A stretch of DNA of 30,006 bases from Macrostomum lignano (GCA_002269645.1 NIVC01004963.1:1-30006); one strand, 5' to 3'; numbered from the stretch's first letter, positions 2,836 through 30,006 are shown. The notes: generated from the sequence alone by a model not told the origin. Numbers and translations: made by a program.

Positions 2836-3269
2836 TACCATAACCCTAAATCACTCAGTCACCTTACTGTTACCTCAGCTGCTTCCTAAAATCTGCATAA
2901 TCTCTGACACTAAATGACCTCTACTTGATCTTATGCACTTTTTTATTCCCAGACACTTCCTGACCGCGTGCAGTGTATGAAGTGTTATTCTCTTAATACT
3001 GAACATTACTTTGTCTTTGCAGACAATATCGTGACTTGAACTTTGCCCTAACTTCTTGAAACTACATGTAGATGTAGATTCTGCATGCATACATGTACCT
3101 GCAGTCTGCGGACCAAAGCTTTCCCGATGACCTTGCCGTGACCCTTGACACCAATCGTACACAAAAAATTGAGCAATTAAACAGCAAGCTTGGAGCATAG
3201 AGCCAAACCGTAAAGAGGCTATTAAAAGTAGATGAACAAACAAGACATTGATAAATTCCCACGTTCCAG

Positions 3270-3802
3270 CTGGTTGGCTCTCGCATCTGCAAGCTGGCCG
3301 CGTCAGGCGACCTCATCGGATTGAAATCGGCGACAGACGAGTTGGGGATCGGCTCAGCCGCCGGACCTGCCCTGTCAGTTGATGACCTGTTCGATTCGAA
3401 CGGCTTCAATCCGCTGATGCGCTCCGCGGCTATCGACCGTCGCTCGCCGTCGATTCAAGGCCAAGTCGAGTGTGCTCGACATCTGCTAGTGACCTGCGGC
3501 GCCGATCCGGATGCTAGCGGCGCCAAACAGGCGTCCGGATTTCGCGCTCTTCACCTGGCGGCCGAGACCGGCAACGAGGAGGTAGCCAGGCTGCTGCTGG
3601 CTGCGGGAGCCGATCGGGATGCTCAAACGGTGGACGATTGTTGGACGCCGTTGATGCTGGCAGTGATCGGCGATCAGCTGGGAGTTGCTCGGCTTCTGTT
3701 GCAGTGCCAGGCCGATGCTGCACTGCGCGACTCTTCGGGCCGCACGGCCGAGGACTGGGCGGTCAGGCTGGGTCGTTGCGAAGTGCTGAACGTTCTGCGA
3801 AG
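3270..3802 (+). CDS. Ankyrin-repeat exon of a Mind bomb-like E3 ubiquitin ligase (internal exon; upstream exons not found)
   Basis: Ankyrin motifs GFNPLMRSA, GFRALHLAAETGNEEVARLLLAAGAD, WTPLMLAVIGDQLGVARLLL and GRTAEDWA. Acceptor ttccag|CTG at 3269/3270 and donor AG|gtcagt at 3802/3803 (phase 2). Confidence 0.85.
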
Positions 3803-4587
3803 GTCAGTGGGGAGGCTGGTGAATGTTGAGCTTGGGGGGTACAATAGCGGCCAGTTTATTAGCGCTCACACAGATCGCACTGAGTCCATAAGTATAGTCT
3901 GAGTAATCCGCCTTATAGTTAGCTTAATTTGCTGTTATTAAACGGAAGAGATTACAAGGGTTTATATAAACTAACTTGAAAGTTTCTTACAAGAAATTTT
4001 TTCCATTTTTAAGGCCTCACATGCTTTCGCCTTAATATTCGACCGCTTCACCTGACTTATAACAAGCAACGTTTTCGCAAAACTGACTGTAGCTTGTTAG
4101 GCACCTTTATTGTACTCCCTTATACTTAAATGAGCCCCTTGAAGTTGCTTCCTGACTGGCTTTGCACACCTAGAGCTCAAGAGAAGGCCAGGTCAATCAA
4201 CTTTGCAGTCAGCGGCCACAGGAAGCCGCACAAAAGAGAAAAAGATTGAACGAAATTCAGTTCTATTCAGCATACGAGATTTCTAAAAGGTCATAGCATT
4301 CATAAAAAACAACAGAACTGTCTAAATTTTAGTTTCTTACTCCAATCAAGAGCTTTGAATTGAGTCTTTAAAGCTTCCTCGTGTACTTGAAGTTCTACAT
4401 CGATTCGGCCCAACGCTAATACACTACAAGAACCGTAATCCCCTGGAGAAAGCTCCGCTCTTACGAGGCAGTAGAAAGACAGAGAAGTCGCCGTTTTGAT
4501 AGTCCGCCTCCATTTAAAGCCCAAGCTGGAAATCTTTTTGTACGGTTGAAAAACCAGCCTCTTAAAGTCGATCACTAACCCCCACAG

Positions 4588-4957
4588 AGACCTATGCGAA
4601 GTGTGTCGCACGGACGATGTCGCAGTCACTTTCCGACCGTGCGGCCATCGAACAACCTGTCGCAGGTGCTGCGTCCTCTTGACCGTTTGCCTCTCCTGCA
4701 ACCGGCCCATTGAGATCAAGGAAGGCCAGCTGGAGGCTGCATCAGCTGATGATGAAGCTTCGTCAACCTCGACAGAGCCTGTACCCATCGATCAGCAACA
4801 GCTGGACGAAAGATTCCAGTGCCGCGTCTGCATGTCCTCCAGCGTCGGCGTTGCCTTCGGCTGCGGACATCAGGCCTGTCGCGGCTGCGCCAAGCAGCTG
4901 ACAGCTTGCCACATGTGCAGACGCTCCGTGGACACGAGAATTAGACTGTATAATTGA
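4588..4957 (+). CDS. Terminal exon with two C3HC4 RING fingers, Mind bomb (MIB1/MIB2)-like C-terminus
   Basis: Branch/acceptor cactaacccccacag|A joins the phase-2 donor in frame (LRR-DLCEVC). RING1 is CEVC..PCGHRTTCRRC..CLSC. RING2 is CRVC..FGCGHQACRGC..CHMCRRSVDTRIRLYN*, resembling the MIB C-terminus. QQQLDE precedes the last RING. Confidence 0.88.
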
Positions 4958-6554
4958 ACTTTAGCCGCCAGATGACTTTGGAATCGATACGAGCTGATAG
5001 GTCACTGCTATACTTGGCGCAATTTTTCACCGTATAGTATGCCAATGCCAGCACTGACTCATATAAACACTGTGTATAAACACTCTCACACAGGGTCTAA
5101 AGTGGCCCTAACATTCTCGTTGTCTGGCAAGTGTACAAACTCTGTAATTTACTCTTGTATTGCGCTCCTGAAAATGTATAAAATTACCGTCTTGATATGT
5201 AAACTTTTTATCTGATTAGTATCATGTCTCATACATGTATTTTATGCACTACTCGCATGAGAAGCTAGTATAGTATGTCATATTAACCATCCATTGTTTG
5301 CCACTGGACTAACACCCCAAGGAATTCTGGTGTTTAAAAACTCATTAAATAAACCAATCAACACGCCCACTGCTGACTCTCAGAACTTCCATCGACCTGA
5401 ATCTAATTATCAGTTGTATGATAGGCTAAGCTTGCATAAATTATCCATTAATTTATGCTTACCGTTTGAACTAAGAATTTTCCCACCAATAATAGAGAAA
5501 TCAGTTCTTGTCTTGCGTTGTTTTCTAAGTTTTAGGAATCCAGCAAATTTGCATAGGCAAGAAACTTAACAACTTAGCTGTTTTGCATTCGAAATCGCCG
5601 CAAGCAATGCTGATTATTTCAGCTTGGTGAGAGCCTCTTTAATAGTTGCCACTGTGTGAACGGTAACCTGAGGTCAACCAAGGTAGCTGTTCACGTTGCT
5701 TTATATTAAAGCATTTACACTGTAGTCCGAAATATTTTAAGGATCGCGTGACTTCTCTTTTTGTTAGCAACTTTTTGAGCCCTCGCTTACAATTCTGGAG
5801 AGTATTTACACCAGATCTAGAAAAATCTGGCTCTCCTGAGTGACCGGAGCGCCCTCAGGTGAGGGCCCTGAGTGCCTCTTTGTCTGAAGCCTGAGACGCC
5901 TTCTTATGAGCGTCCGGAGCACCTCATAAGTCTCCAAGACGCCTTTACTATGATTGTCAGGATGTCTGCCGTATACACCAGCATGTAAACTTGGCTTTCT
6001 GATTGTTGAAGTGGAATTTCAGGGTGCTAAATTATACTCATGTATTCATTACATGTATTCAGATACCAAAAATTCTCACTATTCTACAGTAAGCCCATCA
6101 ATTTCTTTTCTAGATTATAGACTACATGCGTTTAGAACAGAGCTACACTACACTACGTTCTGTATAGCACACCTGACCGTTTCATTTTAAGTGACTATGC
6201 CGTTCTTGGTGGCAGCCAGTGATGGGGTGGCTTTTGTCGGCGTGCCTCGTAATAAAATAGAGAGTAGAGGCAGAGACGAGGGAGTGGGCTAGGGAAAGGG
6301 GAGAGAGGGGAGAAGAGAGAGCGAGAGCAAAGAGGAACTGCTAGAATGGGAGTAGAGCTGAGCTTCAGCCAATAGGGCTGCAGTGGCATGGCTAAAAAAG
6401 GTGTGCCGCGGATCGTTTGCGTGTATACGACTAGCTAGCTGGCGGGGGGCTGCACCTGCACTGTACTATTATTCTGCCATCCCCTCTCCCTCTCTCTCTC
6501 TCGCTATAATCTGCCACAATTTCCTACCTTGCCAGTCAAACGCATCTCGCACTC

Positions 6555-6560
6555 TATAAG
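6555..6560 (+). promoter_or_regulatory. Candidate TATA-like element upstream of the NtA-like gene
   Basis: TATAAG about 50 nt upstream of ATG 6606. Motif and position only. Confidence 0.25.
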
Positions 6561-6605
6561 GTTAAGAAGCAGCTGAGTAGCAGGTCCGACTCTCTCCCTC
6601 ACACT

Positions 6606-7383
6606 ATGGGAGCCGCGCATTGTGCAGCATACGTCAGCCTAGTTGCAGTCTGCTGCACCGCACTGACAGCTGCCGACTGCAGCTACCCAGCGGCTCAGCA
6701 GATGTTCGACCTGGCCCGGGTCTCTCTGGACGGCTGCGCCCAGCGACTGGCCAGCCTGGCGCACATCTTCCGCGACGGCACGCAGCAGGGCGCGAGCTCG
6801 CGAGAGCACCAACTGGTGGCCGCCCGATTCTTGACGGCCAATCTGGTGTTCACCGGACTCGCGACGCACGTTCGAACGTTGTCGGATGCTGCTACTAGCG
6901 AGGGCGGAGGCACAGACTACGAGGTTGTGGTTAAGCCGAACTGCTACGTGAAAGGCCGACTGCCACCTGGTGACGTCACCCTGACCGGGTTGACACCCTC
7001 GATGAAAAACGGACTCTGCCTGCCCGTGAGGGTCCAGGTTGGAGACTTCGGTATGTTCTTCGCCACCGTTCTGCCTTCTGGCCAGGTGGCTATCAACGAG
7101 AACGGATTCGCTGCTGAAGGACGCCAGCTGCAGACAGCCTGGCAGGCTCTGCAGTGTCGTCAGAACCAGGCCGAGGTGAAGCCGCTGCCAGTGGCGGGTG
7201 CGAGCAGAGGCTGCGGCCTGGCAATCAACAACTCCGCATCGGAGGACTGTGTGCTGACCCTCGCTGCGGCTAGGGAAGTCCTTCGTCGGAAATTCGTTTT
7301 TTACGAGGCCGATCTAAAGCTGGAATGTCAGCTGGGTCAGGATGCCGTGCTGAGCAGGTTGCTCAAGGGGCCAGCTGAGTTCG
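6606..7383 (+). CDS. Exon 1 of a secreted protein with an agrin NtA / TIMP-like OB-fold segment
   Basis: Hydrophobic signal peptide (AYVSLVAVCCTALTAA) followed by D-C. The motifs ANLVFTG, YEVVVKPNCYVKG, VTLTGL and C..VQVGDFGMFF parallel agrin NtA (ANVVLTG, YSCKVRVWRYLKG, VVISGF, C..VSTGDTRIFF; recalled, not aligned computationally). Donor TTCG|gtgagc at 7383/7384. Confidence 0.75.
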
Positions 7384-7388
7384 GTGAG

Positions 7389-7745
<357 letters not shown>

Positions 7746-12424: not shown

Positions 12425-12930
12425 TTGAAATTCACTTCATTAAAGATTCATGTTCTTGGATTTTCACTAACGTCCTAGAAGATCCGCTCACATCCTTAAA
12501 GATTCGCTCATGTCTTTGAATATTCACTCACGTGCTTAAAGATTCACTCAAGTACTTGAAGATTCACTCAAGTACTTGAAGATTCACTCACGTACTTGAA
12601 GATTCACTCACAGTCATCTGAGATTCACTCACAGTCATCTGAGATTCACTCACAGTCATCTGAGATTCACTCACAGTCATCTGAGATTCACTCACAGTCA
12701 TCTGAGATTCACTCACAGTCATCTGAGATTCACTCACAGTCATCTGAGATTCACTCACAGTCATCTGAGATTCACTCACAGTCATCTGAGATTCACTCAC
12801 AGTCATCTGAGATTCACTCACAGTCATCTGAGATTCACTCACAGTCATCTGAGATTCACTCACAGTCATCTGAGATTCACTCACAGTCATCTGAGATTCA
12901 CTCACGTACCACGAGATTCACATCCTTTGA
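12425..12930. repeat. Minisatellite: 14 identical 21-bp units (AGATTCACTCACAGTCATCTG, 12600-12893) flanked by diverged 20-bp relatives
   Basis: Exact 21-bp period. The flanking units are of the type GAAGATTCACTCACGTACTT. It explains the SSEIHSQ and MTVSESQ ORFs. Confidence 0.96.
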
Positions 12931-14523: not shown

Positions 14524-15245
14524 CACCCCAACTGCCAGCCGGAAAACTGCTAGCCGACAACTGCCAGCCGGAAAACTGCTAGCCGACAATTGCCAGCCGA
14601 CAACTGCCAGTCGACAACTGCAAGCCGACAACTGCCAGCCGACAATTGCCAGCCGACAATTGCCAGCCGAGAAAACTGCCAGCCGAGAAAACTGCCAGCC
14701 AACAAGTTCTAGCTAATTGAATCTACTGTAGCCTATATATATATATGTGAAGGAGAAGGCATTCAAATTTCGTATTTTAGGTAGCCTTTGCTCTTTCTTT
14801 GAAAGCTTTATTTAAGTAAAGTAATTTAATAGACTTATCTAGGATTGCGTCATATAGCAATCGAAATCGCAAATTAAATAATAAAGTAAATGAACTTTCA
14901 ATACAGAAATATTTACAATGGGCATTACAGAATGCCTTCTCCTTCACATATACTTCTAATGGAAATCTGAAAAAATTAGGGAAGGGAAGGGCGACATTTA
15001 ATGCTAACCCACAAGCCTTTTGCTAGCCAAACAGTTTCGTGCTTTTTACTTAGCTAATAAGTAGGCTACAGTAGATTCAATTAGCTAGAACAGTTTTCGG
15101 GCTGGCAGTTTTCTCGGCTGGCAATTGTCGGCTGGCAGTTGTCGGCTGGCAGTTGTCGACTGGCAGTTGTCGGCTGGCAGTTGTCGGCTGGCAATTGTCG
15201 GCTGGCAGTTTTCCGGCTGGCAATTGTCGGCTGGCAGTTGGGGTG
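14524..15245. mobile_element. Non-autonomous foldback/MITE-like DNA element with long inverted arms built from 13-bp tandem repeats
   Basis: Perfect 18-bp termini CACCCCAACTGCCAGCCG / CGGCTGGCAGTTGGGGTG. Inverted arrays of GACAACTGCCAGCC-type units at 14529-14702 and 15097-15240. A 30-bp perfect inverted pair at 14706-14735 / 15062-15091. No coding capacity. Confidence 0.85.
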
Positions 15246-18317: not shown

Positions 18318-18422
18318 ATGCCGTCAACGGCTACTAAATGCAGCCGTGCGGTCCTCCTGCTTGCGCTCTGCATCGCCGTAGCGGCCGCCGCAACTGACGA
18401 CGCAACGGAGCAGACGCCAGAG
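18318..18422 (+). CDS. Exon 1: signal peptide and start of acidic pro-region
   Basis: MPSTATKCSRAVLLLALCIAVAAAATDDATEQTPE, donor GAG|gtaatt (phase 0). Confidence 0.75.
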
Positions 18423-20472
18423 GTAATTGACTGCTGTGAAGCTTTGTTTTACTGTACTTGTCGGACCAGAAACTATCTTTATGCTTTGCTGAGATGACGA
18501 ATGTTCTAATCCATAGATTATAAATTTTATATTTTCTGCGATAGGCCATGTGCTTTTATGCAGTTTAAATGAGCAACTGCTCAAATTAGTTTGTAGGGAT
18601 ATAACACAGCTTTTCGAAATCGTTCCATTATTGCTAGTTATAGGTGATGATTTTTCGAAAATCAAATAAATTAACCATTGTCTTAACTAAGAATTATCCG
18701 TGTTACATTCATAGAAGCGTTCTTTACATATGCTATTTTAAGACTGTGTTAAATTATGTCTATGCATTTGTAGTCAAATGGTCTACTAGAGACTATTCTG
18801 AGATCTAGTCTTGATCTACTCTTAGATATGGTCTTAGATATGGTCTTAGATCTAGTCTTATATCTAATCTTAGATCTAGTCATGATCAAGTGTTGGATCT
18901 AATCTTAAATAGTCGTAGATATATTCTTCGATTAAAAAAGACCTGCTTGAACTTTTTGAGATACAAACTGGCGCTAAACTAGGTGTACAGTTAGACAGTT
19001 CCATGGCTATTTTTCACCACACTCCCCATCCCCGTGAATTGCGCAGCAAATGCTGGAGAACATGAACGACGCTATCGAGGTGCCGGATTCCATCGAGTTG
19101 GACGGAAATCCGGGCGCCTTCGCCGATTCAATCAACGAGATCGAGGCCGAGGACGAGGGCGTGGACGATCTGGCTGCCAAAGCCATCTCGAGGCACGGTG
19201 AGTTTCAAATTATTTTTTGGCACCTTTCACTCAATTTGTCAGAGCTTAATAACTATGGATATAGATAATTACGTGTAAATAGTTAACATGTGTGCCTTGG
19301 AAGCTGCAATTAGTATGAGCAGAAACAGTGGGCCCGAGAGTTCTTCAACCGATTGGTGATCAGGATGTCACGCGGAAGCGTTGCCAGTGTTGGAAAATCA
19401 GCTCCGGTACCCATGGTGCTGGCGCCTACTGAAAATTGGACCCCTCAATTAGAGGCCCACCCAAAAATGGGATCACTAACAAAAGATCCCGGCTGCGCCC
19501 CTGATGATTGACTTACTTACTTGACTCAGCTGCAGGGGGCTCTGGGCACCCGGATGCAGCGGGGAGGCGTTGCCGCCCATTCCGCTAACCCCTGGCGACC
19601 ACGGGCAGCCGGTGCTCCAGTGGTGCCGGTTTCCACAGCGCACCCCCCCCCCTACGGAGAGTCCAGGAGGTGGATTGTCGCTCACCCGGTAGCCCTTAGG
19701 TAGTGGACGAGGTGGCAGAGATTCTCAAGCCTGAAAATGGCCGATGTAGGTGCGCCTGTCCCGAGTAAAGGCGGAGCATTCACGGATAAAGTGCTCCGCA
19801 TTCTCAACACCGGAGAGGCAGAATGGGCATTCCTCGCTACAGATGCGCCCCTGATGCTACGACGCTTGTACATGCTTGTGGTCCCTGACATGCCGGATTA
19901 CATCACCGATAGTACCTCTGCTGGTTAAAATACCCTTTTCAAAACAGATTCACCAATGATATTGCTTAACTTCTGTTCTGTGCGACAGAGTGACTTTGAG
20001 CTGAAAGTTTCAACTGTTGCTGAGTAAAATCTGTGAAGCAAAGTTTTTGAGCTCCATTGCGCGCCAAGTATTCCAGGCACCCAGTTAACGCAGCAACCAA
20101 GTTGTTTACTCATAATAATGCAACTATTATAGCTAATGCATTAACATGGGGTGGCACGTGCCGCTGGAAGGCATAATGCGCAGTCTGCGTGTTTACTGAC
20201 TCTGATGGCGAACGAATCTAAGCTGAGGAGGGAGGGAGGGTGGGGCCGAGAGGGCGCAGCAACAAGTGACGACGCACGTGCTGCTTGATTCGGTAGCCAG
20301 CACGTGAAGACCGCGCACGCCCTGCCCCCACTCCCCGGGCACAGCAGCTTCCAACAGTGCCTTCAGTGTGTCAGCTTGGTGCAGAATTTTTTTTTAATCA
20401 AAGCAGTTTGGTTGGGTTGGTTCGGGCACAATAGAGACGAGACAATGCAGTTAGAATGATGCCCCGGGGGTA

Positions 20473-20513
<41 letters not shown>

Positions 20514-23500
20514 ACAGCCCCACCCAGCCCTTACTCAGTTGCCAGAGACCACGAGTACTCGACCCCCCCCCCACTTGGCACCCAAACTCTGTGGCGCCAT
20601 AGCCAGTCAACTCAATATAGCCAATAGAAGGCCTAACGACAGTGGCTAAAAAACCTCATTGGATTGTGCTTGCTTAAAATACTAGAACTGATTAGTCCTG
20701 CCATTATGTGGCTCAAAATGTATAATTTGTTGTGTGGATTTTATAAACGAACTGACTTCTGGCATCTATCTATATGGATGTCAATGGATTTGACTCTGAT
20801 AACAAATGACAAGTGAATGATATATTGGCGTTACATTACTTACTCTATAATAAAACTATCTTTGCGCAGCAAAAATCAGCACATAACTCTCTAGGGAATT
20901 TAGTAAATTGACTTATTTTAGTTTAGTTTACGCATAATAGTTCAATGTATGCATTCAGCCCTGCCCAAACATCGCAGGCCACTCGTCGCCAAAAAAGCGG
21001 GTTGCCGGTCGCGGCTTACGCGGCGGCTGCCGCAAAGGCATCTGTGTCGGCACCTCGACCATCGATTTCACATTCTTGGTGGACGGCAAGCACTTCCAGC
21101 GCTGGCGCAAGTTCGCCGCCCATCTGGTCAACCGGCTGCGAGTCGCCCGCTATCGAGTCCGCGTCAACATGATCGTGGCCGGCACCCGGCCTCACTTGCT
21201 GTTCGGTTTCGAATCAGCCAAGTCGAGCATCATCTCCAAGATTAGGCGAACTCGATACGCCAGCAAGGCTGGGAACGTGGCGCTAGGCGAGGCTCTGTAC
21301 TTCTACAGGCGGCGCATTCTCAGGAAAGGACGCCGGTTCAGCGGCAAACTGATCGTGGTGCTCGCTAGCGTAGACTCGAACTCTGGACGCAGCGTGTCGA
21401 ATCAAGTTAGCTACCTAACGGCCAAGGGTGTCACATTCCTGCCAGTTATGGTGGGCTACGATGTGTCTCAGTGAGTTGCTCGTTTTACTGCTGCTATTAT
21501 GTTATTGAAATGCGAAAATTTAAACAGATTACGAGCGCAGAAAATTAATTTCATTCCTAAAGTGCAGCCACCAAGCGACTTGTGCAGTTAAATACTCTTG
21601 ATTTTTAACAGGGCATTTTGGAAGAGCCGCGCTACAGCTGGAAAGTACGTCTGGGTGCCCAAGTTTTCCAGTCTTCAGTTCGTGGTTGACGCCTTCATCC
21701 ACATGCACATCCGATGGAAGAGTGAGTTGACATTCGATTTTAAAAGTTGAATTTTGCGGCTAGATCAATAGCTTTCCAAAAATTCGTACCATTCGGCATT
21801 GAAAGATTGATAAAAAGTACGATTGCTTATACTCAGCAAAAGACAAAGGTGTTCAAGGATACACGCGTTATTAAATTAAAATTTCCACTGTTCTAATTTC
21901 CTGTCTTCATTCGTTTTCATCAAACTGTCTATCTCAAATCCTGTAGATTGAGAGATGCGCATTGAGTCCTGTGTCAGAATAAATGTCTATGGCCCAGAGT
22001 CTTGCCACTCAACTGAGAAACGCTCGAAATTCTTGCGAAGAAGGGGGGACACTCTTGTCTGCTGCTGAGTCTGAATGGATATTCAATTCTATTATTCTAA
22101 GCCGGGAATCCGTCGTTTACGAAAATAAGTCCCTACTTTTGAGGAGAATTAAACCGTTTAAAGCTATCAGTATAGCATTATCATATAGAATGATCAACCG
22201 AAAACGATCGTGTATATGATAATGCGCTTATGTCTATGATTTCAGAATTAAATAATAATCCAATATTTAAAGATCCAAGTGGCAAAAATTCTGAAACCAT
22301 AGACTTAATCTACCATTAGACGATTGAATTCTCCTCCGATTGAAAGTGAAATACTTTTACCATAGACTACGGACTGGCCACAAACAAACATAGTATATTT
22401 TTAGCATTGTAAAATTGCAATCGAATTTCATATATAATAATACTTATCATAGTTTATGGTTAAAAAGTAATCGGCCACACTCAATAGTCCTCTGCTCGCT
22501 TCGATCGCCTCGAGACCGTTAAATACAGTCTTGGACTTTTTAACCATAGAATGTGAATTAAACGGCGCTTATTCCCCAATCGTCCCGGTCAAATAAGTCT
22601 ATGGTGTTGTGTTGAAAAATTTATTTGTCCCGGGCGAAAAAAAGGATCTATATGACCATAAAAACGATCAGAACCATAGACAATTAACCATAGACTAATG
22701 CTGTCAGTCATGTTTGCAAATTTTATACTTCGTGTACAAGCCATTCACCTAAACTGATTAAAATTGTTTTCTGCTTTTTATGTCGATCAGAAAGACCGAG
22801 CCAAGTGGGGACAATACTTCTATATCTCCCGTTCATTCATTTTTCTATGGTCAAAACAACTTCGAACTTAACTCTCGAAGTTAATAATTTCTAAGTCATT
22901 CTGACGGCCATAGAAAAATGAATAAACGGGAGATGTTTTATATATTATTTATACAAAATCTAAACAATCTGTCTAAGGCTTATGTAATGTTTGGTACCAT
23001 TCCAATTGCCCGTAGGCATAGCAGTATCTTTTATAAATATATAATACACTGAAACAAGAAGATACCCTAGGCATAAACTCCAAAACATAGAGTATCTCCG
23101 AGTTAAAGTGTATTATTCTAATGTAGTACACTCTGCCTGTTCGCCTTGTCTTTTCCCTAGTGTTAAAACTTGCGGAGATTATCAGTAGCTTATCTCCGCT
23201 ACCATGGACAACGGAATTCTTTATTTGTTAACAGCGCATTATAAAATCTAGATATTTAGTTCGAGTTTATCTCCGGGGGAGAAATTAATCTCCGCTCCCT
23301 GTATAGATCCATCGCGGCTCACAGGCAGTGAATTGCATGCTAATAACAGACTTACTAAACCTAAACAATTTCAGTGAAAATGACCATGAGCAGCGTATTG
23401 AAGTGTCCCAAGCCGGTTCGGTACAAGACTCCCTGCAAGCACGGCTTCCGCAAAACCATGGAAATTGGCTTTGTCAAAACGCTCAACAAATGCAACCCGA

Positions 23501-26500
23501 TTACTAAAGTTATTAAAAGGAAGTCGTGCGGCTGCGAGAAAAGCCAGTGCTTCGCCAGCCAGGCTATGGAACTCATTCTGGTGATGCAGGCCTCGCAAGA
23601 TCTTGGCGAGTTGCACTTTGGCTACGAGAAGCAATTCATTATCTCTATGATTCAGAAGATGAAGATCGGCGCCAAGAGCGTCCGCGTCTCCGTTGTCCTG
23701 TTCTCTAGCCGTGCCAGCCTGGCTTTCCGTCTGACTGAGTACCACAGCCAATCAAGCGTCATCACCGCTATTAAGGGCCTCAAGCTGATGACTGGCAAGC
23801 ACCGAGCCATAGGCGATGCCCTCTTATTAGTTCGGGAACAGGTTCTAACCGATTCAGCTGAGCAGAGTGCCAAAATGCTCATCGTCATCACTTCGGGAGA
23901 TTCTAACTACGGCCGCAGCGTGGAAGTAGAGAGCAACAGACTGCAGGAGATGAGCGTTTCAATCCTGGTGATCGGTGTTGGGGCTGATGTTAATGATGCG
24001 TCCCTGCAGGTTATCAGCACCGTATACATTCATATTCGCACCTGGATCAAGCTTAAGTACGCATACAAGTACGTACTTCGCATGCGCATCAGCTTCGTAG
24101 CCCAGCCAGCCGTCCATGGCGCTCTGAAGATTCGCTGTCCAAAGTATCGCCGAGTGCTGGTTAGCAAATGCGTTGCTGGCTATAAGAAGCGCATTGTCAA
24201 GTTCTACAAGATGGTTCGCAACACCTGCATGCCATTCAAGCAGGTGCACAAAGTTCGTTGCACCAATCGTAAGTGATCCGTTGAACTAAATTGGCGTGAA
24301 ATTTGATTTAAAAGGCTTATTACAGTACTGTATAAAACTAAAATATGCTTCTATCGATTACTTCCATATTACACCTACAGCTCCAGTCTGCAAAGAAGGC
24401 ACAAAGGTTCACATTGGAAAATGCAACCCTAAAACGCGCCTACGCGTTGTTACGCGAGTGCACACCTCCAAGATTCACGATTGCAGCCACAAAAAGTGCG
24501 TCTGGCGATGCAGCAAGCGGCTAGTCCGAAGGAAGCAGCCCTGTCGAAAGAGTAAGAATGTCGCTTAACTAGGCTAAATGATCAAATTTAATATCAATAT
24601 TATGCCACTTTCAGAATTGCATCTTTCCCACACATTGCAGTTCGATGCATCAAGCGCCGGCTTATGATTGAAAAACGTTGCAGAAAATCAGGCTTTCGTA
24701 GAATCTTCTGGGGATTCTACAGTACAACCCGCGGCAGTTGCAAGCGAGTTCGCATCAAGGTCATTCGAAAAGTTCCGTGCAGTGGCTGCTCCAAGCACCA
24801 GATTCGAATCTTTCACATAACTGTTGGGCGCAAGTGCACTGGAGGTAGTAAAGCGATCTACTCTAGTTTCTACGCCTCACACAAAGGCAGATGCAGCTAC
24901 CAGAGACTGCATGTTACTAAACGGCGATGCGTTTTGAAAAAACGTTGTCCAAGAAAGGCCAGGATCCAAATCGAGACCCAATGTCTCCGTAAAGGAAGCC
25001 GTTATCGCGGCGTGTATTGGACGTACTTAACAAGACTGCAACCTGCCGGTCCATGCGTTCGAGTTCATGGAAAATTAGTTCGACTGATCCCCTGTGGTGG
25101 ATGCACCACTAAGCAACGTAGCTACCAGCATGTAACCACGGGAAAAGCCTGCAAAAGCGGCTTCATTACCAGCTTCGTTACTGTCTATCAGGGCGAGGAA
25201 TCCAGGCGGTGCCACAAAACTCGAGTGGTTATCCGAAAGCGAAATTGTAAGAAATTTAAGTTAAAAAACATGAATGAAACTGTTATTAGAATTTACAGCT
25301 TTTTCTCAAAAACAGCCAAACAACTAATACAAATCCGTTTAAATATTTTAGGCAAGTCTTGCAAAAAGGATACGACGAAAACAACACCGTGCATTCGAGG
25401 ATATAGAAGAACCATCCGAATTCACTTCACGGTCAAAGGAAGTAAATGTGTGCCTCACAAGACTTTGATAAAGAAAGTCAAGTGTGGTGAGGAAAAACAC
25501 GGCTGCAAACCACCGCGCAAAGTCCACACGCGATGCTCGGCTGGGCACAAGTACTCCTACACCACTACGTATTACTACAAGAAGAAGAAGGTTTGCACCG
25601 GTCTGGTTGTTCCGCCAAGTCGCACCTGCAGCAAGGTTGCCGACCTCGTGTTCGTTCTGGACTCTTCGACCAGCATTCACGACGCCGATTTTGCCAAAGA
25701 ATCTCGCTTTGTTCAGCACATCGTTCGCAGGATGGGCGTATCTCCGACTGGCGTTCGCGTTGCTGTTGTCACTTATTCGACCAGACCGAAACTCGTGTTC
25801 AACTTGGACAAGTACAAAACCAAGTCGCAGGTTCTGGCCGCCATGTCGAAGCTTCCACGAGACGAGGGAATCACAATGACTTATGCGGCTATCGACCTTG
25901 TCAACAGTGACATCTACCCGAAGAGACGAGCTGGAGTCCCGTTCATTGTCGTGGTCATCACTGACGGCAAGAGCACGATGGGTGACCCCGTCGCCTCGGC
26001 TAAAGTCTTGAAGAAAAGGGCGCCCGCTTTGTCTCTGTCGGAATCTACAACCCCGACCCAAGCGTGACCGACAAGATTAATCCGTAAGAATACATTTCTT
26101 AAACTGTATTACAGAACATAGGTTACCTGATTCAAATAAGACATTATAAGCGAAGCATGCTTGCTTTCGAAATCTACTGCTGCAGGGCTGAACTAAAGGG
26201 CATCTCAAGCAAAGGAAGATTCTGGCGAGCCGGAAACTTTAACAAGCTTGATTCCATCGTCAGCAGCGTCGTTCGGGAAGTGTGCACAGGTAGGAGAACG
26301 GACACATGCTAGATGCTGGTCTGATGCTTAATAACTTGTAATTTACAATTTACAACTTCAGACATGGGAAAATCAAAATCAAAGTCAGGAGGAAAACGGG
26401 TGTGCAAGATAATCTGCGTGAAGAAGCGCAAGATTTCTGCAAAGAAGATTTGCAGGAAGGACTGCTCGAGCAGGACTCTCATCCGTCACTGCAAGAAGCA

Positions 26501-29500
26501 CAGGGCCTATCGCGTGTTTACTCGAGTCACCTACCGGTGGAACGGAAAGAAATGCGTTCCCAAGAGCCGGAAGGTCATCAAGAAGATCCGGTGCCGTAAG
26601 TAAATGCACTCGTGAAAAACGAGTATATTAATACCTTTTGCACCTTTGTGCCCCAGGCGTGACTTGCAACGCCATTGGCGCATGTTAAGAGAAGCCGAAT
26701 CCAAATATTAGATTATTCGTAACTATGCTAAGTGATTATTCGCTTTCGCCTTGATTGCAGCTCCGAGAACTTGTCCGAAAGCCAAGATCATCCGCAAAGA
26801 GTGCAAGCCTGGCAGGGCGAAGAGCGTCACGACGCACATCTTCTACACGTCGCGTGTGAAGTGCACGATGTCTCTGCCGCCTCGTTGCACGCAGCACTGC
26901 ATCAAGAAGGTGAAGCGCTCGGCCGTTCCGTGCAAGAAAATCAAGTGCAAGGGCGACAAAGACCACGTGACCAAGTGCGGCGGCAGTCGTCGCTATCGCG
27001 TTGTCGTCACAATCAAGTACATCCAAGTAAAAGGCGTCTGCAAGAGGCGCAAGACCACCAAGCGCTATCCGTGTCCGGTCAAGTGCCCAAAGACTCAGAC
27101 CATCATAAGGCCTTGCAAAAAGGGTCGCAAGTTCTCTGTGAAGTCCATCATCAGCTACACCGTTCGTCGCGCGTGCGTTCACAAGGGCAAGTGCACAGTG
27201 AAGTGCGTCAGACGAGTTCTGCGATCGCGAAAGCGGTGCAAAACGCGTCCGCCAGATCGTCGCTGCAAGCAGCCTCCGCCCTTCTGGACCAAGTGTCGCA
27301 AACACTCTGCATACAAGTACCAGATCAAGGCGCTCTACAGGAATGTTCGCGGAACTTGTGTCATCTACAAGCGAGAGACAATTGCCCGACTTCTTTGCCG
27401 TAAGTAGCTCGTTCCTTGACAAGTAGCAAGGGTAGCTAATCTACTCGTCAAAATAGAAGTTTCAAAACCAGGGTTTATATCTGCTTATTGAATTAATATT
27501 TTAGCACCTCGCAAGTGCCCGAAGACGAGAGTAACCAAAACGAAGTGCACAAAGGGAGTCAGGCACAAGGTCACCACTACGATTTTCTACTCTGGTAAGA
27601 TTGTGTGCAGCAAGAAGAAGCCGATCGTATGCCGACAGGTGTGCACAAAGCGAGTGACCAAGTCTGGTGTCCCGTGCTTTCACATCGTGTGCGACGAGGC
27701 CAAGAAGGTCAAGCTTACCAAGTGCGGCGGTAAGAGGCGCTACCGATCCGTCATCACTACCTGGAATACACGAGTCGGAAAGAAGTGCAGGAAGCACAGG
27801 ACCGTCAAGCACTATCCGTGCCCAGTGGTTTGCCCGAAGAGGTCCAAGACCATCAAGCGAACTTCGTGCGGCAAGGGCAGGAAGTACCGGACTCTCACGA
27901 TCGCGACTTCCACCGTTAAGAAGAGGTGCAGCGGCCGTATCTGCACACTGCACTGCATCCGCAAGCTGATCCACTCTCGCGTGTTGTGTCCGAAGCCGCC
28001 ACATCGCTGCAGGAAGCCGCGCAAGGTGCACGTCCGATGCTCGAAGAAGAACTCACACTCGTACATCATCACCTATTACTACGTGAAGAAGCGAGTGTGT
28101 CACCGTAAGTCCCAATGCCTAAAACGTTTTGCAACCAATTATTTTAGTTCGCAATGGTTTACAAGCATACCTTACTTTAAACGAATGCACAACTGTTTCT
28201 CAGGTGCTTTGAAGTCTGGAAAAGCGCGCCGCTGCAAGATTGTGTGCGTGAAGAAGCACAAGCGGTCAGCCAGGAAGCCGTGCAAGAAGCGCAAGTGCCG
28301 ATACCAGCTATCCTACCACACCACCAAGTGTGTGCACAACTTCCGAACCATCACAACGAAGTACCGCACTCGGGTCCACGGACGCTGTGTCTGGCGACGA
28401 AAATCCGTGCGTCGCGTCCGCTGCTCTGGCTGCTCGTCCCACCAGATTCACTACCACAAGACGACGGTCGGCAGCAAGTGCAAGGCTGGACGCACGCAGA
28501 CCTTCCTGAACTTCTACGAGTCGCGCAAGTACAAAACCGGCTGGGTGTGTCACAAGAAGAAAGTCCAGGTGTCCATCATTAAGTGCAAGTGCAACAGGAA
28601 GCCTCTGCTGCTCCTGGACAAGAAGTGCCGCAAGGGCTACAGGAAGCTTACCAAGGTGGTGTTTATCGATCGCGGCGGCAAGTGCATTAGGAAGCAGACT
28701 GTCACTAAGAAAAAGTGCAAGATCATCAAAATCCATTGCGATCCGGCAATGATTGTGAAGAAGTGCACTAAGCACGCGGCTTACCGACTGTTCCTGCAAA
28801 TCAGCTACAGGCTGGTCGACGGAAAGTGCCGCAAACACCGCACAAGGATCGTCAAGAAGCAGCCTTGTCGTAAGTATTGATAATCATGCTTTTTAAGTAC
28901 GCTCTTAAGTAAGTGTTCTAGTTTCCCTAAATGATATCTCATTCTTTGATCAAAATGTAAACACAATGCAGCACCAAGACGCTGTCCGAAGGCCAAGACA
29001 ATCCGCACAAAGTGCAAGCCGGGAGTCGTCAAGCGAGTCACGACGCACATCTTCTACACGTCGCATGTCAGGTGTACAAAGTCGAAGCGGCCTCGTTGCA
29101 CGCAGCACTGCATCAAGAAGGTGAAGCGCTCGGCTGTTCCGTGCAAGAAAATCAAGTGCAAGAAGGACAAGGACCACGTGACAAAGTGCGGCGGCAGTCG
29201 TCGCTATCGTGTTGTCGTCACCATCAAGTACACCGAAGTAAAAGGCATCTGCAAGAAGCACAAAACCACCAAGCGCTATCCGTGTCCGATCAAGTGCCCG
29301 AAGACTCAGGTCATCCGTAAACCCTGCTCCAAGGGCAAGTCGCACAGCTTGTTCGAGGTCAAGTCCATCATCAGCTACACTGTTCGTCGCTCGTGCGTTC
29401 ACAAGGGCAAGTGCACCGCAAAGTGCGTCAGACACGTGGTTAGCAAGAAAAAGCCTTGCCCACCAGTCCCTACTCCGTGTAAAGTTAAGGCCGTGCTCAA

Positions 29501-29610
29501 GCGCTGCAAGAAGCACTCCGCCTACAAGTACTTGATCGAGGTTTACTACAAGCGAATTCGCGGACGCTGTGTACCGCTGAAGCGTATCACGAAGAAGAGA
29601 CTCCCATGCC
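18318..29610 (+). CDS. Gene span (3' incomplete): giant secreted Lys/Arg/Cys-rich modular protein with three VWA domains, at least 14 exons, about 2,050 aa in window
   Basis: Phase-consistent GT-AG chain: 18318-18422, 19047-19197, 20978-21470, 21612-21721, 23375-24268, 24381-24551, 24641-25246, 25352-26083, 26186-26289, 26362-26595, 26761-27399, 27505-28104, 28204-28869, 28972-29610. It needs one -1 correction near 26017. The last exon ends in a donor, so no stop is identified. Confidence 0.8.
18797..18907. repeat. Degenerate 12-bp tandem repeat (TCTTAGATCTAG-like) in intron 1
   Basis: cttagatatggtcttagatatggtcttagatctagtcttatatctaatcttagatctagt. Confidence 0.7.
19047..19197 (+). CDS. Exon 2: acidic pro-region
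   Basis: Acceptor ttgcgcag|CAA, QMLENMNDAIEVPDSIELDGNPGAFADSINEIEAEDEGVDDLAAKAISRH, donor G|gtgagt (phase 1). Confidence 0.75.
19507..19843 (-). mobile_element. 5'-truncated non-LTR retrotransposon 3' end (CCHC knuckle, I/Nimb-like) with (TAAG)n tail and 13-bp target-site duplication
   Basis: The minus strand reads CSEECPFCLSGVENAEHFIRECSAFTRDR, then LCHLVHYLRATG* in another frame. ACTTACTTACTT is at 19511-19522. TGCGCCCCTGATG is repeated at 19494-19506 and 19844-19856. Confidence 0.78.
20473..20512. repeat. (GA)n dinucleotide microsatellite
   Basis: Direct reading, with one AA interruption. Confidence 0.95.
20978..21470 (+). CDS. Exon 3: KKR site and degenerate, basic VWA domain 1
   Basis: Acceptor atcgcag|GC fits phase 1 (a phase-0 acceptor at 20958 also exists). 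It reads DFTFLVDG..VRVNMIVAG..ALGEALY..KLIVVLAS..GVTFLPVMVG. Donor CA|gtgagt (phase 2). Confidence 0.75.
21612..21721 (+). CDS. Exon 4: end of VWA1 (QAFWKSRATAGKYVWVPKFSSLQFVVDAFIHMHIRWK), absent from the ORF track
   Basis: Acceptor ttttaacag|G fits phase 2. Donor A|gtgagt (phase 1). Confidence 0.75.
22824..22934. repeat. Short inverted-repeat (MITE-like) structure in intron 4
   Basis: 22824-22852 versus 22906-22934 match at 27 of 29 nt as an inverted pair. An inner pair AACTTCGA / TCGAAGTT is also present. Confidence 0.7.
23375..24268 (+). CDS. Exon 5: Cys/Lys module, VWA domain 2 (no MIDAS Asp), Cys/Lys module
   Basis: Acceptor aatttcag|TG. Reads ELILVMQASQD..VRVSVVLFS..IGDALLLV..KMLIVITSGDS..VSILVIGVG. 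Donor C|gtaagt. Confidence 0.88.
24381..24551 (+). CDS. Exon 6: one six-Cys basic module
   Basis: Acceptor acctacag|CT and donor A|gtaaga, phase 1-1. Confidence 0.8.
24641..25246 (+). CDS. Exon 7: tandem Cys/Lys/Arg modules
   Basis: Acceptor cattgcag|TT enters the 24664 frame. Donor T|gtaaga, phase 1-1. Confidence 0.8.
25352..26083 (+). CDS. Exon 8: basic modules and canonical VWA domain 3 (MIDAS intact), with an apparent -1 frameshift near 26014-26020
   Basis: Reads DLVFVLDSSTS..VRVAVVTYS..GITMTYAAI..IVVVITDGKS. After the shift it reads GARFVSVGIYNPDPSVTDKIN, with donor CC|gtaaga (phase 2). Confidence 0.82.
26186..26289 (+). CDS. Exon 9: C-terminal helix of VWA3 (AELKGISSKGRFWRAGNFNKLDSIVSSVVREVCT), absent from the ORF track
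   Basis: Acceptor gctgcag|G fits phase 2 of the shifted frame. Typical VWA end (EL..IS..F..L..I). Donor G|gtagga. Confidence 0.82.
26362..26595 (+). CDS. Exon 10: basic Cys modules
   Basis: Acceptor aacttcag|AC and donor C|gtaagt, phase 1-1. Confidence 0.85.
26761..27399 (+). CDS. Exon 11: four-module block, paralogue of exons 12 and 14
   Basis: Acceptor gattgcag|CT, donor C|gtaagt, 639 nt. Confidence 0.88.
27505..28104 (+). CDS. Exon 12: older paralogue of the four-module block
   Basis: Acceptor attttag|CA, reads PPRKCPKTRVTKTKC..TKCGGKRRYR..YPCPVVCPK, donor C|gtaagt. Confidence 0.85.
28204..28869 (+). CDS. Exon 13: basic Cys modules, partly paralogous to exons 7 and 10
   Basis: Acceptor tttctcag|GT, contains CSGCSSHQI (exon 7 has CSGCSKHQI), donor C|gtaagt. 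Confidence 0.85.
28972..29610 (+). CDS. Exon 14: recent duplicate of exon 11; the gene probably continues beyond it
   Basis: Acceptor aatgcag|CA, 639 nt, shares long identical stretches with exon 11, donor C|gtaagt at 29610/29611. Confidence 0.88.
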
Positions 29611-30006
29611 GTAAGTTTTAGTCTCTTGTTTTTGCAAACTATTTGTTATTTCAAACTGTAAGAAATGCAATTGTTCATTCAATTGCTGTTTGATTTATTT
29701 AAGCACTTTCACTAAATCTGTAACTTCTAAGTATTGTACCTGAGACATGTTTTCAGGGTGATGGGTTTCTTGTTCTTTCAGCTCTTGTATTTTGTTTTCG
29801 ATTCTTGAATCCAGAAGATTCAAAGTAATGAGATGAAACAATAGTTTTCGATTGAGCACTATAAAAAACTCTATTGACGAACGCAAAACTTTGTTTAACA
29901 TAAGACCCATCTGTATGTGACGAAAAATAATAGAATAGTTAATTAAGTTTCAGAAAATCTTTTCAAGGAAATCCAACTTATTGCAGAAGTTTTCGAGAGT
30001 ATCTGA

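Follow-up and report, generated by a model that had tools for sequence, protein, structure and literature searches.

The question raised by positions 18318-29610 (+ strand) of NIVC01004963.1, a 30,006-nucleotide contig of the Macrostomum lignano assembly GCA_002269645.1 (the whole contig is called the window here), is what kind of protein is built from an array of small, extremely basic, cysteine-rich modules interrupted by VWA domains, and what such a chain may do for a flatworm. The window contains the 5' part of Mlig000187, a real transcribed gene of M. lignano, and its product is a mosaic protein of the secreted type, in which an array of polycationic beads is combined with VWA domains of the collagen-VI/PTMP1 type; the gene is restricted to the genus, transcribed body-wide and recently amplified. 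In public databases it is already known, solely as 'hypothetical' (GenBank PAA94323.1, 'hypothetical protein BOX15_Mlig000187g2') or as 'VWFA domain-containing protein' (UniProt A0A1I8JHM6), and the kind of protein (mosaic, multi-VWA, secreted) is known as well; the identifier Mlig000187 is not named in the main texts of the literature searched. What is new is the module itself, the extreme charge borne by folded beads and the genus-restricted amplification.

The gene model, built from GT/AG sites and the continuity of the reading frame, comprises 14 exons on the + strand (Table 1), separated by introns which are mostly about 100 nt long and which follow the GT...AG rule in 13 cases out of 13. 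The protein has at least 2048 residues, 2048 codons being free of stops when one missing base is put back (see below), and the translation agrees with A0A1I8JHM6 without a mismatch; GenBank PAA46257.1 (labelled 'Mlig000187g3, partial', g3 being the copy on this contig) is an exact 847-residue prefix of the same translation. The exon chain built here thus coincides exactly with that of two public models, and one of them comes from RNA-seq: the GenBank annotation of the M. lignano assembly was obtained from RNA-seq transcript assemblies (PMC5730564), so that the chain has transcript support. The exon ends have phases 0,1,2,1,1,1,1,2,1,1,1,1,1,1, that is, phase 1 at 11 of the 14 (the open last end included), a signature of shuffled extracellular modules; a signal peptide, disulfide modules predicted to fold by themselves and symmetric phase-1 module exons, the features of metazoan mosaic proteins, are all present. 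Exon 3 ends in phase 2, at a position matching the split within VWA3, and in a phase-constrained intron scan exon 4 was the best placed of the phase-2-to-phase-1 candidates, being alone in combining a GTGAGT donor with an acceptor rich in pyrimidines, and it aligns to the tail of VWA3; another candidate for the VWA1 tail (21744-21850) was rejected, its sole acceptor being in the wrong phase, as was an acceptor at 24387 for exon 6, the public models agreeing with 24381.

With the exception of the signal peptide (MPSTATKCSRAVLLLALCIAVAAAA), the protein has no hydrophobic stretch. An acidic region follows (residues 25 to about 85, net charge -9, with 18 D/E against 9 K/R in the first 100 residues), with SPKKRVAGR after it, and from there on the chain is dominated by basic residues: over the 2048-residue translation, K amounts to 14.4% and R to 10.7% (K+R 25%), C to 6.3%, D+E to only 4.2% and W to 0.7%, giving an isoelectric point of 10.6 and a net charge of about +428. 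These values, together with three Pfam matches to VWA, bear out the earlier description of a giant, polycationic, disulfide-rich protein with a signal peptide and three VWA domains. The basic residues are carried by 26 modules of about 44 residues each, in agreement with the 25-30 first estimated. The typical pattern is C-x10-C-x19-C-x11-C (range C-x8-16-C-x17-24-C-x9-13-C); 19 modules have four cysteines, and the six-cysteine variant with an additional C-x(4-8)-C-x3-C, which had also been described, accounts for the other 7. A strict form of the four-cysteine pattern occurs 16 times, with a mean net charge of +12.5 per module, whereas 2000 shuffles gave 0.46 occurrences on average and never more than 4. 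The linkers between modules are short (1-8 residues) and often Pro-rich (PPRT, PVK, PPVPTP, SG), and no regular dibasic processing site was found in them.

The initial annotation had recognised no named family in this architecture, and the searches point the same way. Exons consisting only of modules gave no match in Pfam even at E<=1, a profile of the module none among PDB sequences at E<=10, and a four-module exon none among PDB sequences beyond composition-driven noise. When the four-module unit was searched as a profile among 1.84 billion representative proteins, 4 matches were obtained, namely three M. lignano gene models and a 249-residue Logan open reading frame (ORF) carrying no species label; no relative of the module was found outside Macrostomum in this set, and the module profile recovered from it no other M. 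lignano gene. No homologue was obtained for the largest module exon, in an index that seemingly does not return M. lignano proteins. Three Logan genomic contigs, presumably from a congener (L002-L004; SRR31628392, SRR31628403 and SRR31628435), carry an ortholog whose exons and introns are laid out as in the window. It is 60-78% identical to the window at the amino acid level (exon 10, on L002, 78%; exon 11, 60%; exon 12, 63%), and it keeps 46 of the 46 aligned cysteines (7/7, 20/20 and 19/19 in the three exons, respectively), the module boundaries and the spacing between modules; nonsynonymous and synonymous divergence are 0.30 and 1.15 (dN/dS 0.26). The ratio and the retention of all cysteines show purifying selection on the gene and strict preservation of its cysteine framework.

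As for the structure of the module, AlphaFold2 models were obtained with an alignment of the paralogous modules as input (an alignment of two-module pairs was used for the pair). A single four-cysteine module was modelled with a predicted local distance difference test score (pLDDT) of 83.1 and strands at residues 7-10, 19-30 and 33-44, and the pair formed by modules 11 and 12, a six-cysteine and a four-cysteine one, with a pLDDT of 87.7, as two three-stranded units. The module is therefore predicted to be a small bead in which two disulfides, or in some cases three, pin a three-stranded antiparallel beta-sheet. When both models were compared by Foldseek with the PDB, nothing better than E 0.79 was obtained, and neither midkine nor pleiotrophin nor any thrombospondin type 1 repeat (TSR) was among the top 50. 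A small-domain family with a confidently predicted structure and no Pfam or PDB relative would thus be added to the known repertoire.

The matches of the three VWA domains to PF00092 (E 2.9e-11, 1.9e-29 and 1.4e-27; 44.4, 103.6 and 97.4 bits, for VWA1 to VWA3) all exceed the gathering cut-off of 23.8 bits, and VWA3 has as its best PDB sequence matches collagen VI alpha3 (six separate VWA stretches), the mussel byssal protein PTMP1 (proximal thread matrix protein 1; 9e-22) and the I domains of integrins alpha2 and alpha1. A homologue search with the VWA3 exon, in the same index, yielded generic VWA proteins only (31-41% identity). Read from the sequence, a complete metal ion-dependent adhesion site (MIDAS) is found in VWA3 alone (LDSSTS ... 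ITMTY ... ITDG).

The end of the gene is not in the window. Position 29610, which had been taken as the gene end, is the last base before a phase-1 splice donor (...CCATGC C/GTAAGT, the slash marking the junction), as at other module exons, and the apparent terminus of the ORF, CRKF followed by a stop, is intron read-through after exon 14; the gene therefore extends past the end of the contig, which stops 396 bp into the intron (29611-30006). The public models P0006 and P0001 splice from exon 14 onward to ...PCPPRRCPKSRTTTSNC... The continuation can be followed, over positions 21478-39430, on scaffold NIVC01000012.1 (L001), a paralogous or allelic locus collinear with the window at 98-99.4% identity, in which window positions 25519-30006 recur as a tandem unit of about 5.5 kb, present in about four copies that are 99.6-99.7% identical. 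Each unit contains a VWA domain, of the only type with a complete MIDAS, plus about 17 modules. In the 3' part of L001, read by eye, there are further modules, divergent terminal exons and a Lys-rich tail (...KVKKPKKVVKVVKPKKVIKHKKVIKHKKKKNRR...) near 39430, with which the gene ends, about 18 kb past the point where the window stops; a rough estimate from this locus gives about 80 modules and at least five VWA domains for the full protein. Exon shuffling and recent tandem duplication of the 5.5-kb unit have evidently enlarged the gene, which illustrates well how a giant gene confined to one genus can grow by very recent duplication. Tandem amplification is common in abundant structural secretory proteins.

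The reading frame of the repeated units is complicated by single-base deletions. Within VWA3 of the window, one G is missing at 26015/26016 (26010..26020, +; GAAGAA-AAGGG, where GAAGAAGAAGGG is found elsewhere) and the frame is broken, as established by a three-frame reading and by DNA alignment with copy 1 of L001; the site is intact in that copy and in the longer public models P0001 and P0006 (...AKVLKKKGARFVSVG...). Since the assembly is PacBio-based, this deletion may be an assembly error. Units 3 and 4 of L001 have another 1-nt deletion in common, GACGG-AAG, in the VWA exon (at about 29518 and about 35020), where the model PAA94323.1 terminates; it may reflect either a genuine truncation or an error of assembly.

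Where along the body the gene is transcribed can be read from the positional RNA-seq of Arbore et al. 2015, re-analysed by Brand et al. 2020 (PMC7336406), in which the samples are head only (A), head to testis region (B), head to ovary region (C) and whole worm (D). Reads assigned to Mlig000187.g2 number 1555, 1754, 1308 and 2236 in A to D, with expression values of -6.37, -6.45, -7.02 and -6.28, well above those of most of the table rows listed; the transcript is in the high-count bin and in the class '0,0,0 Non-Specific', and g3 and g6 are likewise Non-Specific (PMC7336406). The dataset has tail, ovary and testis classes, and Mlig000187 is in none of them; nor do these data give any neoblast, germline or in situ hybridisation annotation for it. 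The tail adhesive organs, the prostate, the cement and shell glands, the antrum and the gonads (with the oocytes) all lie behind the head fragment, so that equal expression in head and whole worm argues against a role as glue, egg cement, eggshell or seminal component.

What, then, may such a protein do? Our tentative preference, to which we would give somewhat less than an even chance, goes to a body-wide secreted or matrix scaffold, a structural polycation which cross-links or condenses polyanionic glycoconjugates and which is connected to other proteins through its VWA domains. The protein would be secreted by somatic cells along the whole body; the bead array would bind, condense or cross-link polyanions by multivalent charge interactions, the candidate partners being the sulfated or carboxylated glycans of the surface mucus, of epidermal-gland (rhabdite-type) secretion, of the glycocalyx or of the extracellular matrix; the VWA domains would add metal-dependent protein-protein links, to the protein itself or to collagen-like partners, and a cohesive network would result. 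This reading is supported by the 26 modules, far above chance in number and each bearing a charge of about +12, and by the signal peptide, the kinship of VWA3 with matrix proteins, the confident bead models, the Pro-rich linkers without regular processing sites, the phase-1 boundaries, the cysteines kept in the ortholog, the non-specific expression and the tandem amplification. A precedent is offered by Mlig-ap1, whose polycationic Lys/Arg regions bind negatively charged glycans in a manner blocked by heparin (PMC6410801); the charge-based mechanism proposed for Mlig000187 may, by analogy, be the same. Midkine and pleiotrophin, which bind heparin, may serve as a further functional analogy for the modules.

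Several observations weigh against the body-wide scaffold. Sea water screens simple charge interactions, and M. lignano is a marine animal; the Foldseek comparison with the PDB yielded no structural analogue that would back a particular binding mode. Both the tissue and the ligand are inferred, and gut, parenchyma, epidermal glands and subepidermal matrix are not told apart by the positional RNA-seq. A degenerate MIDAS is seen in two of the three VWA domains (VDGKHF in VWA1, MQASQD ... ITSGD in VWA2). The deletions in the contig and in units 3 and 4 of L001 differ, and the true length and frame of the repeated units are accordingly uncertain. Lastly, keeping worms in octets instead of singly is accompanied by a roughly 4-fold lower level of g2 (log2 fold change -2.06, adjusted P 0.025; PMC7336406, Tables S6/S9), which the model leaves unexplained. 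Were the scaffold reading true, a second and structurally different polycation-based system of cohesion would exist in the best-studied flatworm adhesion model; in practice, the gene would offer a definite candidate for the protein behind the body-wide secretions or matrix of flatworms, and a model from which polyanion-binding materials tolerant of salt could be designed.

Among the alternatives, an internal extracellular-matrix protein (a basal lamina or pericellular microfibril accessory of the collagen-VI or matrilin kind, as opposed to an external secretion) is unlikely, and several facts nonetheless speak for it: VWA3 is closest to the N-terminal VWA domains of collagen VI alpha3 and to collagen-binding I domains, uniform expression along the body axis would suit a body-wall matrix, and the phase-1 mosaic architecture is typical of matrix proteins. 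With the VWA array of collagen VI alpha3, the matrilins and PTMP1 the protein shares the class of VWA domain, several of them in one secreted chain, and the MIDAS of VWA3. It differs in having no collagen helix, EGF domain or coiled-coil, in that its VWA domains are set in a polycationic array of novel modules, and in that two of its three VWA domains are without the MIDAS residues. No collagen, EGF, coiled-coil or other matrix-assembly Pfam domain is found in any exon of the window; moreover, extreme charge and restriction to one genus are unusual for the core matrix, and a tandem amplification as recent as its 99.7% identity implies is probably more typical of secretory products.

A role in defence, whether as a precursor that releases cationic antimicrobial peptides of about 45 residues or as an intact, microbe-binding coat protein of the surface mucus, is distinctly unlikely. 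It would account for cationic, disulfide-stabilised beta-sheet modules of defensin-like size, for body-wide expression, and for rapid lineage-restricted evolution with changes in copy number; in addition, an acidic N-terminal stretch followed by KKR is reminiscent of cationic granule proteins, which carry acidic pro-pieces. The linkers, however, lack a regular dibasic cleavage motif, VWA domains are interspersed along the chain, the charge of -9 in the acidic stretch is too small to neutralise +428, and the preservation of module boundaries and spacing in the ortholog is what would be expected of an array that stays intact.

A bolder form of the body-wide scaffold, in which the 44-residue, K/R-rich, two-disulfide bead is a fold family born within Macrostomum and the protein is the structural polycation of a body-wide rhabdite or mucus secretion, is doubtful, and we give it a small chance only. 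If it were true, it would provide the first molecular component of a classic flatworm organelle, and a natural folded polycation condensing polyanions in sea water. We know of no description of the protein composition of flatworm rhabdites, and nothing usable was found in the literature on VWA proteins, eggshell or rhabdites in Macrostomum or on rhabdite histochemistry.

The bioadhesive, cement or eggshell role first proposed has been weakened by the expression data, and a component of the tail temporary adhesive, of egg cement or eggshell, or of the seminal fluid, produced by a gland of the tail plate or of the reproductive tract, must now be regarded as very improbable. Its appeal lay in the resemblance to Mlig-ap1 (Wunderer et al. 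2019, PMC6410801), which is likewise a giant M. lignano protein with a signal peptide, a strongly polycationic composition and Cys-rich parts. VWA proteins occur in other marine adhesives, PTMP1 being among the nearest solved relatives of VWA3; many adhesive and reproductive proteins are lineage-restricted and tandemly amplified; and there is a small rise (+0.74 log2) in g2 from the head-to-ovary sample to the whole worm. On the other hand, Mlig-ap1 has its basic residues in low-complexity Lys/Arg repeats, whereas Mlig000187 has them in disulfide modules; the folded part of Mlig-ap1 consists of C-type lectin, vWD/C8/TIL and EGF domains, in place of VWA; and Mlig-ap1 is expressed in the tail adhesive glands, whereas all three Mlig000187 transcripts are positionally non-specific, with g2 as high in the head as in the whole worm and outside the tail, ovary and testis classes. 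Of the domains that mark the proven glue proteins Mlig-ap1 and Mlig-ap2 (C-type lectin, vWD/C8/TIL, EGF, LDLa, TSP1) Pfam finds none in Mlig000187, only VWA; the genes of Mlig-ap1 and Mlig-ap2 lie on other scaffolds of the assembly, and no in situ hybridisation annotation ties the gene to antrum, prostate or adhesive organs.

No better placed is the possibility, highly improbable after the comparisons made here, that the modules are divergent homologues of the pleiotrophin/midkine (PTN/MK) C-domain or of the TSR, and the protein a heparin-binding array of the TSR superfamily. What stands of the PTN/MK- or TSP1-like relationship first suggested is the likeness to the midkine/pleiotrophin C-domain (PDB 1MKC, 2N6F): four cysteines at nearly the same distances (C-x9-C-x21-C-x9-C in midkine, C-x8-12-C-x17-24-C-x9-13-C in the modules compared with it), a frequent Gly after the second cysteine of the module, a strongly basic composition and a three-stranded antiparallel sheet, predicted in the case of the module. 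What is not supported is the relationship itself. Pfam PTN_MK_C (PF01091), PTN_MK_N (PF05196) and TSP_1 (PF00090) have no match at E<=1 in any exon; an hhalign comparison of the module profile with an alignment of midkine/pleiotrophin C-domains (the midkine sequence was checked against PDB 1MKN and 1MKC, and three more C-domain sequences were taken from PDB alignments) gave a probability of 0.2% over a single aligned column; PDB sequence searches and Foldseek were negative as well. Spacing and basicity are thus a resemblance, insufficient as evidence of membership. PTN and MK have two domains per chain, as compared to tens in Mlig000187, and the module family is restricted to one flatworm genus. 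With TSR arrays (SCO-spondin, properdin, the C-terminus of Mlig-ap2) the protein has in common secretion, phase-1 exons and a tandem of small, elongated, three-stranded, disulfide-pinned modules; it differs in having mostly four and not six cysteines, and neither the WxxW Trp ladder nor CSxxCG, the TSR motifs, is present in the module alignment. The disulfides of PTN/MK domains connect C1 to C3 and C2 to C4. The labels 'midkine-like' and 'glue or cement' are therefore both unsupported by the evidence at hand.

That the locus is non-functional (a decaying repeat array, a pseudogene or an assembly artefact), as could be suspected from the VWA3 frameshift, the other deletion common to two units of L001, a contig ending within the gene and an assembly that is PacBio-based and rich in repeats (PMC5730564), has a practically negligible probability in view of an ORF of 2048 codons after one base is restored, a deletion site intact in L001 copy 1 and in A0A1I8JHM6, thousands of mapped RNA-seq reads, and an ortholog with dN/dS 0.26 and every cysteine kept.

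Table 1. Exons of the 5' part of Mlig000187 in the window (MIDAS, metal ion-dependent adhesion site; 6C and 4C, modules with six and four cysteines).
Exon	Position	Strand	Content
1	18318..18422	+	Start codon, signal peptide MPSTATKCSRAVLLLALCIAVAAAA, onset of the acidic stretch; same start as PAA46257.1
2	19047..19197	+	Acidic N-terminal region; stops just ahead of SPKKRVAGR
3	20978..21470	+	Most of VWA1 (Pfam VWA E 2.9e-11); degenerate MIDAS, DGKHF replacing DxSxS
4	21612..21721	+	C-terminal helix segment of VWA1, AFWKSRATAGKYVWVPKFSSLQFVVDAFIHMHIRWK; in both public protein models
5	23375..24268	+	Module 1 (23404-23529), whole VWA2 (~23566-24090; degenerate MIDAS; Pfam E 1.9e-29), module 2 (24136-24261)
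6	24381..24551	+	Module 3 (six Cys); acceptor at 24381 gives ...RCTNPPVCKEG..., in agreement with the public models
7	24641..25246	+	Modules 4-7; module 7 completed by exon 8
8	25352..26083	+	Modules 8 and 9, then most of VWA3 (from 25639; Pfam E 1.4e-27); MIDAS residues intact
9	26186..26289	+	C-terminal segment of VWA3, AELKGISSKGRFWRAGNFNKLDSIVSSVVREVCT
10	26362..26595	+	Short C-x3-C-x11-C-x3-C segment, module 10
11	26761..27399	+	Modules 11-14, forming a four-module unit (6C-4C-6C-4C)
12	27505..28104	+	Paralogous unit of four modules (15-18), the last of them interrupted by the following intron
13	28204..28869	+	End of module 18, short Cys segment, modules 19-22
14	28972..29610	+	Third four-module unit, modules 23-26; 3' end open, donor GTAAGT at 29611-29616

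Stop-free ORFs of 180-234 residues lie on the opposite strand, exactly beneath the module exons (26739-27440, 27504-28052, 28311-28883 and 28953-29645, all -); they were rejected as genes and judged to be by-products of the Lys/Arg/Cys-rich codon usage. Intron 2 contains a GC-rich block (19300-20400, 53%) with long ORFs on both strands, adjoining a (GA)n tract near 20470-20520; the two + strand ORFs that were scanned had no Pfam match, and the block may be a degraded mobile element.

Microsatellites are abundant in the window, which is eukaryotic DNA. Upstream of Mlig000187, a gene at 3255-3899 and 4550-4954 (+) encodes ankyrin repeats (Pfam Ank_2, 3e-30) and a C-terminal RING finger (zf-C3HC4_3, 8e-15), and looks, from these domains, like an E3 ubiquitin ligase. 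A long ORF at 6510-7380 (+), hydrophobic at its N-terminus (MGAAHCAAYVSLVAVCCTALTAADC...) and unmatched in Pfam, runs straight into a perfect (TCTA)88 at 7394-7745. Further simple repeats, (TCTA)48 and minisatellites with units of 20, 48 and 21 bp, are found at 572-762, 1392-1706, 2490-2835 and 12463-12909, and two arrays of a 14-bp unit at 14529-14705 and 15091-15240, about 390 bp apart, are inverted with respect to each other (CAACTGCCAGCCGA and its reverse complement), and may represent a foldback or transposon-like structure.

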